From assembly GCF_001194135.2 (NCBI RefSeq), contig NC_068987.1, forward strand, positions 30,248,092 through 30,312,091: 64,000 nt of DNA, in the 5' to 3' direction. The stretch comes from Octopus bimaculoides. Taxonomy: Eukaryota. Made by a program: the position numbers and the translations under genes. Under the pieces are notes generated by a model, which was given only the letters and a program-made list of their open reading frames with translations, did no database searches and had not been told where the DNA came from. Position 1 is the stretch's first letter; the number at the start of each line of letters is the position of its first letter. Below, piece by piece: positions 52,801-55,800 of this stretch.

Positions 52801-55800
52801 AAACTCGGTTTGCCAATGAGGCACTTGAACTTCAGACTATTGTTTTTGTAAAATGGGCTTTAAGAAGGCTTTTCAAAAGTTCAGTTAAGCTCCTGAGCAT
52901 ATAAATACCCTTCACAATTCCACTCTCTATAACTCTTTCTGGATCCGAATTGTTCGAGCAGGTTTTGTATTTAAGCTATCACAAAATGTTTTTAAATGAT
53001 ACCTGCATATGTAATGCTAACCTTTAACTGTTTAAACATTTTAAAAACATGACTCAAAATTTAATAGAAGGGATATTGTTTGCTTGCTAATATAATTGGC
53101 TTTATAAAACATACCCATCTGTTTGTGTGTGTGTGTGTGAGAGAGAGAAAAAGAGAAGTGAGGAGAAAGAAACATCTTTGCAGACATAAATGTGCAACTG
53201 TCTACAAGCATACTTTGTGCACATGTGTTTGTATGTTTTATTGAATTCTCATTAAGTCTTCTCTTTTCATATTTGTTCTATCTATCTATCTATCTTCCTC
53301 CCTCCCTCCTTTCCTCCTTCCCTCCTCCCTTCTTCCTTCCTTCCTTCCTCCCTCCCTCCCTCCCTCCCTAAGGGGTAGACATGAACAGTAACATAAAGGT
53401 ATAAAATGGAAGAAAAATTAACACCTAGAATATGTTCTTTTTGCTATTGAGTCCATTGGATGGTGAAGAAAAAATGTTGATTAGAATATGCTTACCAGCT
53501 GTTTCAATCATGTGTTCTTTTCAAGCCTATTATATTGTAAATAACTTGAAGTTTGTAATGTTTAATGGATGTAAAGTACATTTAAAATATGATGAATTTC
53601 AAAGACATCCTGTTACTGTTATTAAAAAGCTACTGTTGGACTGCACCCACTACACTCTTGGAGTGGTTGGCATTAGGAACGGCATCCAGCTGTAGAAACA
53701 TTGCCAGATCAGATTGGAGCCTGGTGCAGCTGCTGGCTCTCCAGACCTCAGCCAAACCGTCCAACCCATGCCAGCATGGAAAACGGACGTTAAACGATGA
53801 TGAAAGAATCAGTTAATGCTGTGAATTGATAGAAGTGTTGCAGCATCTGATCTGACTCGTAATTGTTAGAGCTATATGAGGTCTGATTCACACCTTTGAT
53901 AAAAACGCCATGACCATTTTGATCTACTGATTAAATCAAAATGACATAAAGGCAAGTGTCTAGGATTACATGACTCAATATTGATTTCTTTTTTAAAATG
54001 TGTGTTATTCATAGTGTGTCCAGCAACTACCAAGTTCCTCATTGGCTTGCTCAGCCCAGCTTATTATTTCTGGTATATCTAGAACTCTATTATTCTTGTG
54101 TCATTCCTTTAAGATGATAGGAAATAATTTGACTCCTATGTCTATTAGGTATATGCTCACTTATTAGTTTGTACAGTTTAGACTGTTTGTGTTTCAAGTC
54201 CAAATACTTTGGTTCCGTTGTTATTTTTTGTTTCTCTCCTATGCTCTGCCATCTCCACAATCCTGTCTCAACTTCCTGATTCTTTTCTCTGCTCTGAAGG
54301 AAGATGAATCTGCTTTCCCAGGGGTTGATACAAACCAGTGATGCATTGTGATCATTGCATTTATTTATGCCTTCTTCCTTCCACACACAATGGTCTTGTG
54401 CCTTATCAATATGTAAAATAAAATAAGAAAACTAAATTAATTTGCATATCCTTGTGTAATGAGGAAGTTCTTGTAGCAAGAAAATTCTGGTAGCAAACTT
54501 GAATTCTCAATGAAAATTACCATGTTATTAGAAGTGACTTCCATGGTTTTCTGAATCATTAGTAACGTCAATGTTTTACGACTTCATTTTTCTATGAAAT
54601 TTCATTAAAGCTTGAGAAAAATGTTCAACAGTTTGGCAAAAGAGATTGATAAAATAAGTACCAGGTTTTAGAAAATAAATACTGGGGTTGATACATTCGG
54701 CTAAAGATTCTTTAAGGCAGTGTCCCTGTATGGCCACAGTCAAATGACTGAAAAGATAAAGACAATATGTAAAAGGTGAATTAATGCAAATGATACTGGA
54801 CTTTTGTTCAGATATTTTTAATCATGCCAAACAACTTTCTACCTAATTACAAGAACTAATATCCAGAATATTAAAACACATTTCAGTGTCATTCCATCTG
54901 TGTTTCCTTTGTAATCACAGTTGATTTTTAATATGATATAAAGTGATAGAAAGTCTCTGCCTTTATGAAGTGCTAGATGAAAGCAAAAAGAATAATTTAT
55001 AGAAATATTAGAATATGTTGTGACCCTGAGGTAGAAACTAAAATCTTTTTGGATCTGGAACATGAAAATGTAACTATTCCAAACACCACACACTAAAATA
55101 CATTATAATCAATTTAATGTCTGTTTTACTAAAGGTTAGATGGATTGGTTTCACCACTTTTTCAACTGGAAAATTACTATTTTCTAATCTCACAACGTGA
55201 GATATTCAGCAACAGCACTTTGTAGTAAAGATTGTTTGCCAACATAATATGGCAGTCCTAAACCAGGACTGCCATATTATGTTGGCAAACAATCTTTACT
55301 ACATAGTGCTGTTGCTGAATATCTCACGTTGTGAGATTAGAAAATAGTAAATTTTTAATTTATAAATCAGGGACTAGTTGTCACTTTGAAAACTATATAT
55401 TTCAAATGGGAATTTGGCAGCGCCCCCTCTAGCTGAACAGTTATTCTGTGCTGATGAAGGGAAATAACCCAGAAATCGCGATACACAGATATTGTTTTGA
55501 GCTGAGTGATGATGCTAGATTCCCTTGTTTGAAAATGTAAGGACACAGATCATGTCGTATAGCCATCTGGTGACGATGTCTCCTGGGGCTAAATTACAGC
55601 AACATTAGTCCTAAACCAGGACTGCCATATTATGTTGGCAAACAATTTTTACTACACTTTTTCAACATTTTGATTTTCTACTTGTTTCCATCCTTTATTT
55701 TTTGTGCTGTAGCATCCTCTTGTGCTGTAGCATCCTGAGACTAGCCCCATCCATTCTTACTCACATCTTCAGTCTTTTCTTTTGTTGGTTTCTACTTTCT

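Follow-up and report, generated by a model that had tools for sequence, protein, structure and literature searches.

The window analysed here (the whole stretch of DNA, 64 kb in length) contains an exact 12-bp target-site duplication (TSD), CACTTTTTCAAC, whose copies at 55155-55166 and 55655-55666 are the only two occurrences in the window; a chance match of this kind was obtained in none of 100 dinucleotide shuffles. The two copies flank an insert of 488 nt at 55167-55654, in which no stop-free stretch exceeds 60 aa, and the read depth of the repeat family to which the insert belongs steps up and down precisely at the limits 55167 and 55654. The first-pass annotation had described a 12-bp TSD around a non-coding 488-bp insert, and this description holds, as does its period of 353 nt, which is given by a 50-mer at 55254-55303 that returns at 55607-55656 with 49 of 50 nucleotides identical. 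The direct repeat is real, but the annotation overlooked the dominant part of the repeat structure, i.e., an inverted copy of the 3' part of the unit, with which the insert begins and which, at 87-93 nt, is its largest feature. The insert is laid out as this inverted partial copy followed by 1.14 direct units, with the following features in order of position (U denotes positions within the 353-nt unit):

55155-55166, no strand: left TSD CACTTTTTCAAC, an exact 12-mer with a boundary that is ambiguous by 2 nt ('CA').
55167-55253, minus strand: inverted, 5'-truncated partial unit, U18 to U104, the reverse complement of 55271-55357.
55254-55270, plus strand: native hairpin AGTCCT-AAACC-AGGACT, U1-U17, which is the inversion axis and recurs at 55607-55623.
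55254-55606, plus strand: complete 353-nt unit, U1-U353, with the period taken from the 50-nt direct repeat.
55302-55357, plus strand: the 'tail', U49-U104, 56 nt, lying between the two 3'-terminus clusters of the family.
55445-55489, plus strand: type I hammerhead-like motif, found as a descriptor match.
55607-55654, plus strand: start of the second unit, U1-U48, a terminal redundancy equivalent to a pseudo-LTR, within the 49/50 match to 55254-55303.
55655-55666, no strand: right TSD CACTTTTTCAAC, followed by ATTTTGATT, an AT-rich target.

The inverted arm equals the reverse complement of 55271-55357 at 83 of 87 positions when compared ungapped, and a gapped alignment of the two leaves one mismatch and one indel. 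The outer end of the arm (...TAGTAATTTTCCA) adjoins the left TSD, and the centre of the inversion is the loop of the native hairpin. At the other side, U48 (55654) is the right terminus of the insert, and the 56-nt tail, which is present in the internal and the inverted copies, is missing there. The unit is non-coding, has 38% G+C and is without LTR, PBS and PPT. Private differences from the family consensus are common to all three copies at the locus, and the inverted and direct copies share locus-specific differences, e.g., at 55248/55276/55629, 55216/55308 and 55184-5/55339-40. Because all three copies carry the same private differences, they point to a single event. The window holds no further family copies besides the locus itself.

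A MITE or a foldback DNA transposon was rejected, as the insert lacks terminal inverted repeats: its termini TGGAAAATTAC... and ...TTTTTACTACA do not mirror one another, and the inverted repeat that it does have lies inside the 5' 200 nt. An assembly artefact was ruled out, since both junctions are crossed in independent individuals and species. Matches of Rfam miRNA models over the palindrome were all far below their gathering scores and were put down to a generic long hairpin.

The hammerhead-like motif lies in the middle of the unit, as the first-pass annotation had proposed, with U48 located 171 nt and U104 227 nt downstream of it. It has every one of the core nucleotides, namely CUGAUGA (55451-57), GAAA (55472-75), A15.1-U16.1 and H17=A, as well as helix I (UCUGUG/CACAGA), helix II ((A)GGG-AAAUAA-CCC(A)) and helix III (A-U-[CGCG]-A-U), and cleavage is predicted between A55483 and C55484. 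Using a descriptor that tolerates a mismatch at the helix II base, 55445-55489 was the sole match in the 64-kb window, and shuffled windows gave 0.01 matches with helix I set at 6 bp or more. The proposed hammerhead stands as far as the core, the three helices and this sole match are concerned, but the 10.1/11.1 pair is A·A at the locus (A·G in ~40% of family reads), and no Rfam hammerhead match was found in the whole window at the gathering threshold, nor in 801 nt or a 76-nt stretch at E<=10. A mismatch at the helix II base is also found in the axolotl HHR_Amex2, which is located on a 350-353-bp repeat (PMC4209133; PMC7229834).

The family consensus of the motif is the same as the locus sequence except for A/G at 55471, G>A at 55460 (~21%) and CpG decay at 55477-79. 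In a subfamily, the helix III sequence UCGCGAU is replaced by CCAUUGGU, which is still an A-U-closed hairpin, and such an alternative hairpin-forming helix III argues for real ribozyme ancestry. When covariation of the hammerhead was sought across organisms, the consensus in organisms B, D, E, and F was that of A and brought no added divergence. The entire family is homogeneous, and the per-site conservation of the core is uninformative. The putative hammerhead may process multimeric transcripts, and it would not be required for insertion.

The plus strand of the 353-nt unit folds at -106 kcal/mol (z = -4.4 vs. dinucleotide shuffles, with no shuffle equally stable), whereas the fold of the minus strand is weaker (-90 kcal/mol, z = -3.4); the circular fold of the unit has z = -4.8. 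The hairpins listed in the first-pass annotation and its closing helix CAGCAACA/TGTTGCTG exist in the sequence, and the minimum-free-energy fold contains them.

The insertion is found at the same site in at least five of six organisms, the site being filled in B, C, D, and F besides the source organism, and the data for E being consistent with a filled site. In the five other organisms, no empty site and no joint that skips the 500 nt was found. The copy at the locus is old and fixed, and the non-coding retroelement to which it belongs is very abundant. The palindrome arms are ~98-99% alike vs. a between-species flank divergence of roughly 6%, a similarity above expectation which means either that the arms were homogenised or that the inversion arose after the insertion.

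The expectation that other copies exist was borne out by the reads of six related organisms, in which the family has thousands of members; the statements made here on the family rest on read and contig pile-ups and not on aligned copies. In contigs of metagenomes and prokaryote genomes, a 21-mer scan for further copies gave 0 hits, and an exact look-up of a spurious 59-aa ORF matched no record. Read depth over the insert is 400-3500 vs. ~0.5-1 in the flanks, and the word-depth ratios of contigs give an estimate of ~0.6-1.3 thousand copies for the least-covered part and 10-23 thousand for the core. Most family copies are solo and 5'-truncated. Depth climbs steadily ~25-fold from 55374 to 55600, with the same profile in organisms B, D, E, and F, its range across the unit is ~40-fold, and the 3' ~100 nt are the most abundant part of the unit. 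The depth peak at 55560-55637 belongs partly to another repeat that has only that core in common. Read-through into the next unit occurs in ~1-4% of copies, with ~40 of ~2600 reads continuing beyond 55359.

Two family termini recur, U45-50 and U101-105, both with unrelated AT-rich flanks, and the locus ends in one of each, at U48 on the right and at U104, inverted, on the left. In fine bins, DNA depth drops by about half from 55294-98 to 55304-08 and further at 55338 and 55354-58, to ~2% of the peak past 55359, and the loose ends at these drops are AT-rich with low agreement. The best-supported loose end in three organisms is 55169, with unrelated AT-rich flanks, which identifies the outer end of the inverted arm as a recurrent family terminus. 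Moreover, an independent expressed copy stops at the U48 site and continues into the unrelated GCTTATAATG... (loose ends 55303 and 55658). The unit-to-unit junction (U104 to U114) is crossed by several independent contigs of other organisms, and the cyclic unit is thus real. Head-to-head joints at other positions were seen in other family copies, and inverted junctions at the AGTCCT-AAACC-AGGACT hairpin are rare in the family (a handful of reads). The 'opposite strands' joints 55230/55646 and 55259/55617 were rejected as read-placement artefacts of the locus's own inverted repeat.

RNA reads from three runs are equal in both orientations and broadly track the DNA copy profile, and RNA relative to DNA is lowest over the hammerhead region. 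These runs, which are standard cDNA RNA-Seq libraries in which circles may be under-sampled, showed no pile of read ends at 55483/55484 and no enrichment of unit-length RNA.

[quoted passage not shown] It has in common with them the non-coding unit of a few hundred nucleotides (here 353) with low G+C (38%), a type I hammerhead-like motif on the sense strand, in which helix I has 6 bp, helix II is short (four positions) and helix III has 2 bp and a palindromic tetraloop, the highly self-paired RNA and a TSD of more than 4 bp (PMC7229834; 10.64898/2026.07.22.740005). In contrast to these retrozymes, the locus has one hammerhead in 1.14 units without a tandem array, the family consists overwhelmingly of 5'-truncated solo copies, the motif has A·A or A·G at 10.1/11.1 and is missed by Rfam, retrozymes are described without an inverted 5' arm, and the three cDNA RNA-Seq runs gave no sign of unit-length or circular RNA.

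A retrozyme in the strict sense would be excised by the hammerhead as RNA, closed into a 353-nt circle, reverse-transcribed for more than one lap and integrated as cDNA. The unit length, the low G+C, the hammerhead-like motif and the self-pairing of the plus strand (z = -4.4 to -4.8) fit this explanation by analogy with metazoan non-LTR retrozymes (PMC7229834), as do an insert longer than one unit and the U104 to U114 junction crossed by contigs in several organisms. However, with a single hammerhead, the locus's own transcript cannot free a monomer, and the ~40-fold uneven coverage with defined termini is unlike copying from random points of a circle. Read-through copies of merely ~1-4%, and RNA reads that follow the DNA profile in both orientations without ends at the predicted cleavage site, speak against it as well. 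A circle leaves the inverted arm unexplained, and the terminal redundancy is equally explained by a tandem linear RNA. We regard the strict retrozyme route as unlikely.

LINE-dependent elements, too, typically have a high copy number, a gradient of 5' truncation and a TSD such as the 12-bp one seen here, and LINE-like ORF fragments were seen by eye elsewhere in the window, with no Pfam match. The insert could accordingly be read as a SINE-like element mobilised by a LINE, with an arm that stems from twin priming as in L1 or from a later local rearrangement at the hairpin, and with an incidental hammerhead-like motif; the unexpected likeness of the arms could then mean that the duplication is younger than the insertion. 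In L1 twin priming, the second nicked strand primes on the same RNA and a 5' inverted segment comes to lie inside one TSD, the inverted and direct parts usually come from neighbouring stretches of the RNA that do not overlap, and the insertion has a poly(A) end. At the locus, the inverted part overlaps the direct part completely and starts at a second defined 3' terminus, there is no poly(A), and the TSD encloses the inverted arm, the outer end of which is a canonical family terminus. In place of an A-rich or simple-repeat tail, the family has two discrete termini separated by 56 nt, and no tRNA-, 5S- or 7SL-derived head was found by a tRNA/tmRNA search and an Rfam small-RNA search of the insert. 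The full hammerhead core with three helices would also be unexpected by chance, and mobilisation by a LINE is in our view quite improbable.

We hypothesize that the insert is a copy of a high-copy non-autonomous non-coding retroelement that was inserted by the machinery of a Penelope-like element (PLE) via target-primed reverse transcription, and we consider this explanation probable. In PLEs, partial tandems serve as pseudo-LTRs, an inverted 5'-truncated copy is adjacent to them, 5' truncation is strong, the tail is present at one end only, and a hammerhead is located near the 3' end (PMC8557442). The PLE protein cuts and extends both strands, it initiates reverse transcription at two neighbouring internal sites that flank the tail, it uses multimeric RNA, insertion is independent of the hammerhead, and RNA-seq is without ends at the hammerhead site (PMC11167929). 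The locus has a partial tandem, an inverted 5' copy within the TSD, and two 3' ends with a one-sided tail, and the family is strongly 5'-truncated; the partial tandem, the inverted 5' copy, the two 3' ends with the tail and the hammerhead near the 3' end together are the published PLE signature. Further likenesses to PLEs (PMC8557442; PMC11167929; PMC4209133) are the AT-rich target, the position of the hammerhead upstream of the two alternative internal start sites of reverse transcription, and RNA-seq without ends at the ribozyme site. As the PLE integration signature explains the layout, an RNA circle is unnecessary.

According to this model, the template would be a tandem sense RNA longer than one unit, and a staggered cut in an AT-rich target would give rise to the 10-12-bp duplication. 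The 3'-OH of one strand would prime cDNA at the internal site U48, and synthesis back over ~400 nt through the unit junction would produce the 1.14 direct units (55254-55654). The 3'-OH of the other strand would prime at the alternative site U104 and copy 87-93 nt, resulting in the inverted arm (55167-55253). The two cDNAs would join at the palindromic AGTCCT-AAACC-AGGACT hairpin, where minus-sense cDNAs are self-complementary, and the U1-U17 hairpin is presumably where the copies primed from opposite strands meet. Which enzyme acted, in which order the steps took place and that the ribozyme is active are the parts of the PLE model that we infer. Target-primed integration of a non-coding insert, already favoured by the first-pass annotation, is supported by the TSD and the anatomy, and with 1.14 direct units the insert is longer than one unit, in agreement with its exclusion of a ribozyme-cut monomer as the template. 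Of the two templates it had put forward, a tandem multimer suffices, and nothing requires or points to a 353-nt circle.

Several observations are counted against the PLE model. The tail of 56 nt compares with the published 30-40 bp, inverted junctions at the hairpin are rare, no ORF for a PLE reverse transcriptase (telomerase-like) or a GIY-YIG endonuclease was found in the window, the hammerhead has a noncanonical 10.1/11.1 pair and no Rfam match, the arms are more similar than expected, and the depth peak at 55560-55637 comes partly from another repeat. The element also differs from PLEs themselves in its unit of merely 353 nt without an RT or GIY-YIG ORF, neither of which was found in the 64-kb window, and its hammerhead is 'canonical metazoan' in shape, whereas in the minimal PLE type helix II is long and helix III nearly absent.

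Hammerhead and termini are placed as in PLE pseudo-LTRs, the Xenopus retrozyme families match PLE pseudo-LTR ends (bioRxiv 10.64898/2026.07.22.740005), and the 3' ~100 nt are the commonest part of the unit, which would also suit a solo pseudo-LTR fragment of an autonomous coding PLE instead of a dedicated non-autonomous family. However, the unit junction recurs at a period of 353 nt without an ORF at the locus and also in independent contigs from other organisms, which indicates a template without an ORF. A short ORF that begins in the CUGAUGA box stops after 28 codons at the locus and likewise in the family consensus, and it was therefore rejected as the remnant of a PLE ORF. A fragment of a coding PLE is thus very unlikely, and the position of the first-pass annotation that the insert is more than an end of a coding Penelope element is strengthened, as the 353-nt period leaves an ORF no room.

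Newt satellite 2 and Schistosoma Sm-alpha are abundant repeats with ~330-bp units and a type I hammerhead, the short palindromic helix III of which suggests action as a dimer. Newt satellite 2 is present mainly in long tandem arrays and Sm-alpha in SINE-like copies, and self-cleavage has been shown for them. Unlike in these repeats, arrays are rare in the family described here, and its cleavage is a prediction from the motif. It is conceivable, if rather unlikely, that the family is a live retrozyme of this possibly cephalopod lineage, in which transcripts of rare tandem masters would be cut by the noncanonical A·A/A·G hammerhead, either in dimeric form or aided by a protein, the monomers would be closed into 353-nt circles and reverse-transcribed by a PLE in rolling-circle fashion from two defined sites, and the solo copies would be dead ends. 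If true, this would tie circular retrozyme RNA directly to the both-strand priming of PLEs in a new class of animals.

Returning to PLE-mediated insertion as the preferred explanation, the proposal of a retrozyme family is retained for its non-coding, hammerhead-like character, but most copies are solo and tandem arrays are rare, with ~1-4% read-through. We infer that the family is a PLE-dependent, retrozyme-like non-autonomous element, i.e., a known kind of element and an ordinary repeat, of which the locus is a clean example. The mobilisation of animal retrozymes by PLEs was proposed in 2020 (PMC7229834) and argued again in 2026 (10.64898/2026.07.22.740005), and for vertebrate retrozymes both monomeric derivatives and a dependence on PLEs have been reported (Li et al. 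2026, 10.64898/2026.07.22.740005). The argument has so far consisted mainly of co-occurrence and of sequence similarity to pseudo-LTRs. The locus provides a different kind of support, as an ORF-less, hammerhead-bearing unit is found with the full PLE footprint inside a single TSD. This footprint, i.e., priming on both strands, two internal starts, the tail and a multimeric template, has been reconstituted in vitro for a PLE, and in the read data the two termini recur family-wide. The locus can therefore serve as a worked example and as an annotation lead for a very abundant repeat in these genomes.

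The insert at 55167-55654 is bounded by the 12-mer CACTTTTTCAAC, which has two exact occurrences in the 64-kb window (55155-55166 and 55655-55666), while none of 100 dinucleotide-preserving shuffles contained a match. The target-site duplication (TSD) proposed by the first-pass annotation is thus borne out, as are the direct 50-mer repeat (55254-55303 and 55607-55656, 49/50 identical, spacing 353 nt) and its hairpins and CAGCAACA/TGTTGCTG pairing, which form in the minimum-free-energy fold. Absent from that description was the largest repeat: 55167-55253 and 55271-55357 are reverse complements that differ by one mismatch and one indel, and the axis of inversion is the loop of the hairpin AGTCCT-AAACC-AGGACT, which belongs to the unit itself. 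With the unit numbered U1-U353 from 55254, the 488 nt between the TSD copies comprise three parts enclosed by a single duplication. The private differences from the family consensus are common to all three copies in the locus, as expected of a single event.

Features of the insert
55167-55253, minus strand: inverted copy, U104 to U18, reverse complement of 55271-55357
55254-55606, plus strand: direct copy, U1-U353, 353-nt period
55607-55654, plus strand: second, partial unit, U1-U48, direct repeat of 55254 onward
55445-55489, plus strand: hammerhead-like motif, UCUGUG-CUGAUGA-AGGG-AAAUAA-CCCA-GAAA-UCGCGAU-A/CACAGA (slash, putative cleavage site)

When raw genomic reads of organism A, from three runs of 2026, were mapped to the region, the depth was 400-3500 across the insert versus ~0.5-1 across the flanks, the increase and the decrease coinciding exactly with positions 55167 and 55654. 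From the ratios of contig word depth in four runs, the least-covered part is estimated at about 0.6-1.3 thousand copies and the core at 10-23 thousand, and the family is present with the same consensus in the related organisms B to F. On the non-redundant permuted unit (55302-55654) the depth was very uneven, climbing steadily from a minimum of ~80 at 55362-55373 to ~3500 at 55590-55625 and then declining. At 5-nt resolution across 55254-55385, it was halved between 55294-98 and 55304-08 (U45-50), stepped down at 55338 (U85) and again at 55354-58 (U101-105), and was ~2% of the peak past 55359; about two thirds of the reads reaching U48 go on into U49. Loose ends at these steps are AT-rich with low agreement, indicating unrelated flanks, and the best-supported loose end in three organisms, 55169, is the mirror position of U102 and practically coincides with the insert's left end. 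The depth profile and loose ends together indicate that most family members are solo copies truncated on the 5' side, with 3' ends that recur at two positions 56 nt apart. Read-through into the next unit occurs in only a few per cent of all copies; the unit-to-unit junction is crossed by several independent contigs, so the cyclic unit is real. The 353-nt RNA circle envisaged in the first-pass annotation is a possible template, but it is not needed to explain the insert, and as a general mode it is opposed by the uneven family coverage.

A second abundant repeat shares only the core 55560-55646 with the element and inflates its depth peak; the palindrome AGGTTCGTCCATCGATCGATGGACGAACCT lies on both sides of this repeat and is seen as loose ends with an agreement of 0.6-0.8. 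In a single contig of organism C, placed at 55596/55373, telomere-like repeats (GGGTTAGGGTTAGG) adjoin a copy of the element.

The anatomy of the insert corresponds point by point to published features of Penelope-like elements (PLEs), i.e., strong 5' truncation, partial tandems forming pseudo-LTRs, an inverted 5'-truncated copy adjoining the 5' side, a tail at one end only and a hammerhead close to the 3' end (Craig et al. 2021, PMC8557442). In vitro, both DNA strands are cut and extended by a PLE protein, which initiates reverse transcription at two neighbouring internal positions, the tail being the sequence between them, and which uses multimeric RNA, the hammerhead being dispensable for insertion; no RNA-seq ends were found at the PLE ribozyme site (Frangieh et al. 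2024, PMC11167929). The locus follows this two-site pattern, with its right end at U48 and its inverted left end at U104, both recurrent family termini, and the inverted and direct copies join at the palindromic hairpin, the one type of site that lets two minus-sense cDNAs anneal to each other. We therefore interpret the insert as one that PLE machinery made by copying a tandem RNA of a non-autonomous unit with no ORF and a putative hammerhead. That a PLE supplied the enzyme is our inference; there is no PLE ORF in the 64-kb window.

The motif at 55445-55489 was the sole descriptor match in the window, with a mismatch at the helix II base allowed, and requiring a helix I of at least 6 bp gave 0.01 matches in shuffled windows. 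Its invariant core nucleotides are complete (C3 to A9, G12 to A14, A15.1-U16.1, H17 = A). Six base pairs form helix I, with further pairing past a small internal loop, helix II has an A·A juxtaposition at its base below three G-C pairs, and helix III consists of two pairs under a palindromic CGCG tetraloop; the published shape of canonical metazoan type I hammerheads is the same (PMC4209133), and axolotl HHR_Amex2 provides a precedent for the mismatch at the helix II base (PMC7229834). Three points count against a hammerhead: the G10.1-C11.1 pair, normally conserved, is lacking; family reads have A (~60%) or G (~40%) at position 11.1; and Rfam hammerhead models gave no match to the motif region, even when 76 nt were searched at E<=10. 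Evidence for it comes from a subfamily in four organisms that has CCAUUGGU after GAAA instead of UCGCGAU, which likewise forms a hairpin closed by A-U, with H17 and helix I coming next.

The plus strand of the unit folds at -106 kcal/mol (z = -4.4 versus dinucleotide shuffles) and the minus strand less stably, at -90 kcal/mol (z = -3.4). In three RNA-Seq runs of organism A, both read orientations were equally represented and the profile along the insert broadly tracked the DNA copy profile, with the lowest RNA-to-DNA ratio over the hammerhead region. None of these runs contained reads at least 99% identical to the locus copy or a pile of read ends at 55483/55484, and the remainder of the signal was dominated by a few single-locus host transcripts. 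Such transcripts, which contain element fragments and have loose ends with an agreement of 0.98-1.0 at 55303/55658, 55370 and 55622, drive a ~5-10 times higher RNA-to-DNA depth ratio over the tail/hairpin part (55302-55366, 55167-55253) than over the hammerhead part (55445-55511).

The left junction is crossed by contigs of organisms B and C and the right junction by one contig each of B and D; a left-flank contig of D enters the element's first bases, and contigs of F and E extend 61 nt into the left arm and 64 nt beyond 55166, respectively. No contig skipping the insert was found in organisms B-F. Flank divergence from organism A ranges from ~3% in E and F to 6% in B, C and D; the insertion, present in at least five of the six organisms, is therefore old and fixed, and none of them offers an empty site. 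The palindrome arms (55167-55357) differ by one mismatch and one indel over ~90 nt despite an insertion common to organisms with ~6% flank difference; they seem homogenised, perhaps via gene conversion inside the palindrome, or the inversion postdates the insertion.

At ~60390-60589 the plus strand carries a KIF21A-like coding exon whose splice signals are clear, and the insert is probably intronic in sense orientation. About 60 nt downstream of the exon's donor site, a full-length 5S rRNA match (72 bits, 60650-60768, plus strand) is directly followed to about 60840 by a tRNA-like stretch (…GGTTCCGTGTTCAGTCCC), and the two may represent a 5S-headed SINE or retro-pseudogene in an intron. The interspersed repeat at 54582-54830, more abundant than the studied element (contig word depth 1e5-7e5 versus ~13-75 for single-copy sequence), looks like a 5'-truncated SINE copy, its family having a conserved head (...GTTTACGTCCCNGTAACTTAG) ahead of 54629 and an A-rich tail (CAAGTAAAAGAAAAAAA) past 54753. 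The sequence at 55910-56241 is moderately repeated, its word depth in four runs being ~20-60 times that of single-copy sequence. A minisatellite at 14325-14935 (22-bp period, AAGGCATGGCGTAGTACCTCCA, 98-100% matches) is broken by an N run, an assembly gap, and a second N gap lies inside A/T homopolymers near 15600-16000. The ORFs 13799-14149 (plus) and 28160-28678 (minus) resemble C-terminal LINE reverse transcriptase fragments by eye; neither had a Pfam match at E<=0.01.

Functionally, the element resembles an animal non-LTR retrozyme or a derivative of a PLE pseudo-LTR. It departs from a retrozyme in the strict sense in that the locus is not a tandem array, and both its hammerhead and a circular RNA form are putative. 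A link between retrozymes and PLEs was proposed in 2020 (PMC7229834) and argued anew in a 2026 vertebrate preprint (bioRxiv 10.64898/2026.07.22.740005). Our full-text literature search found no paper that connects cephalopods with hammerheads or retrozymes, apart from one mentioning Naiad PLE remnants of cephalopods in passing. Read as a PLE-mediated insertion, the locus would be a clean instance, taken from nature, of the integration footprint that PLEs leave, here on a unit lacking an ORF.
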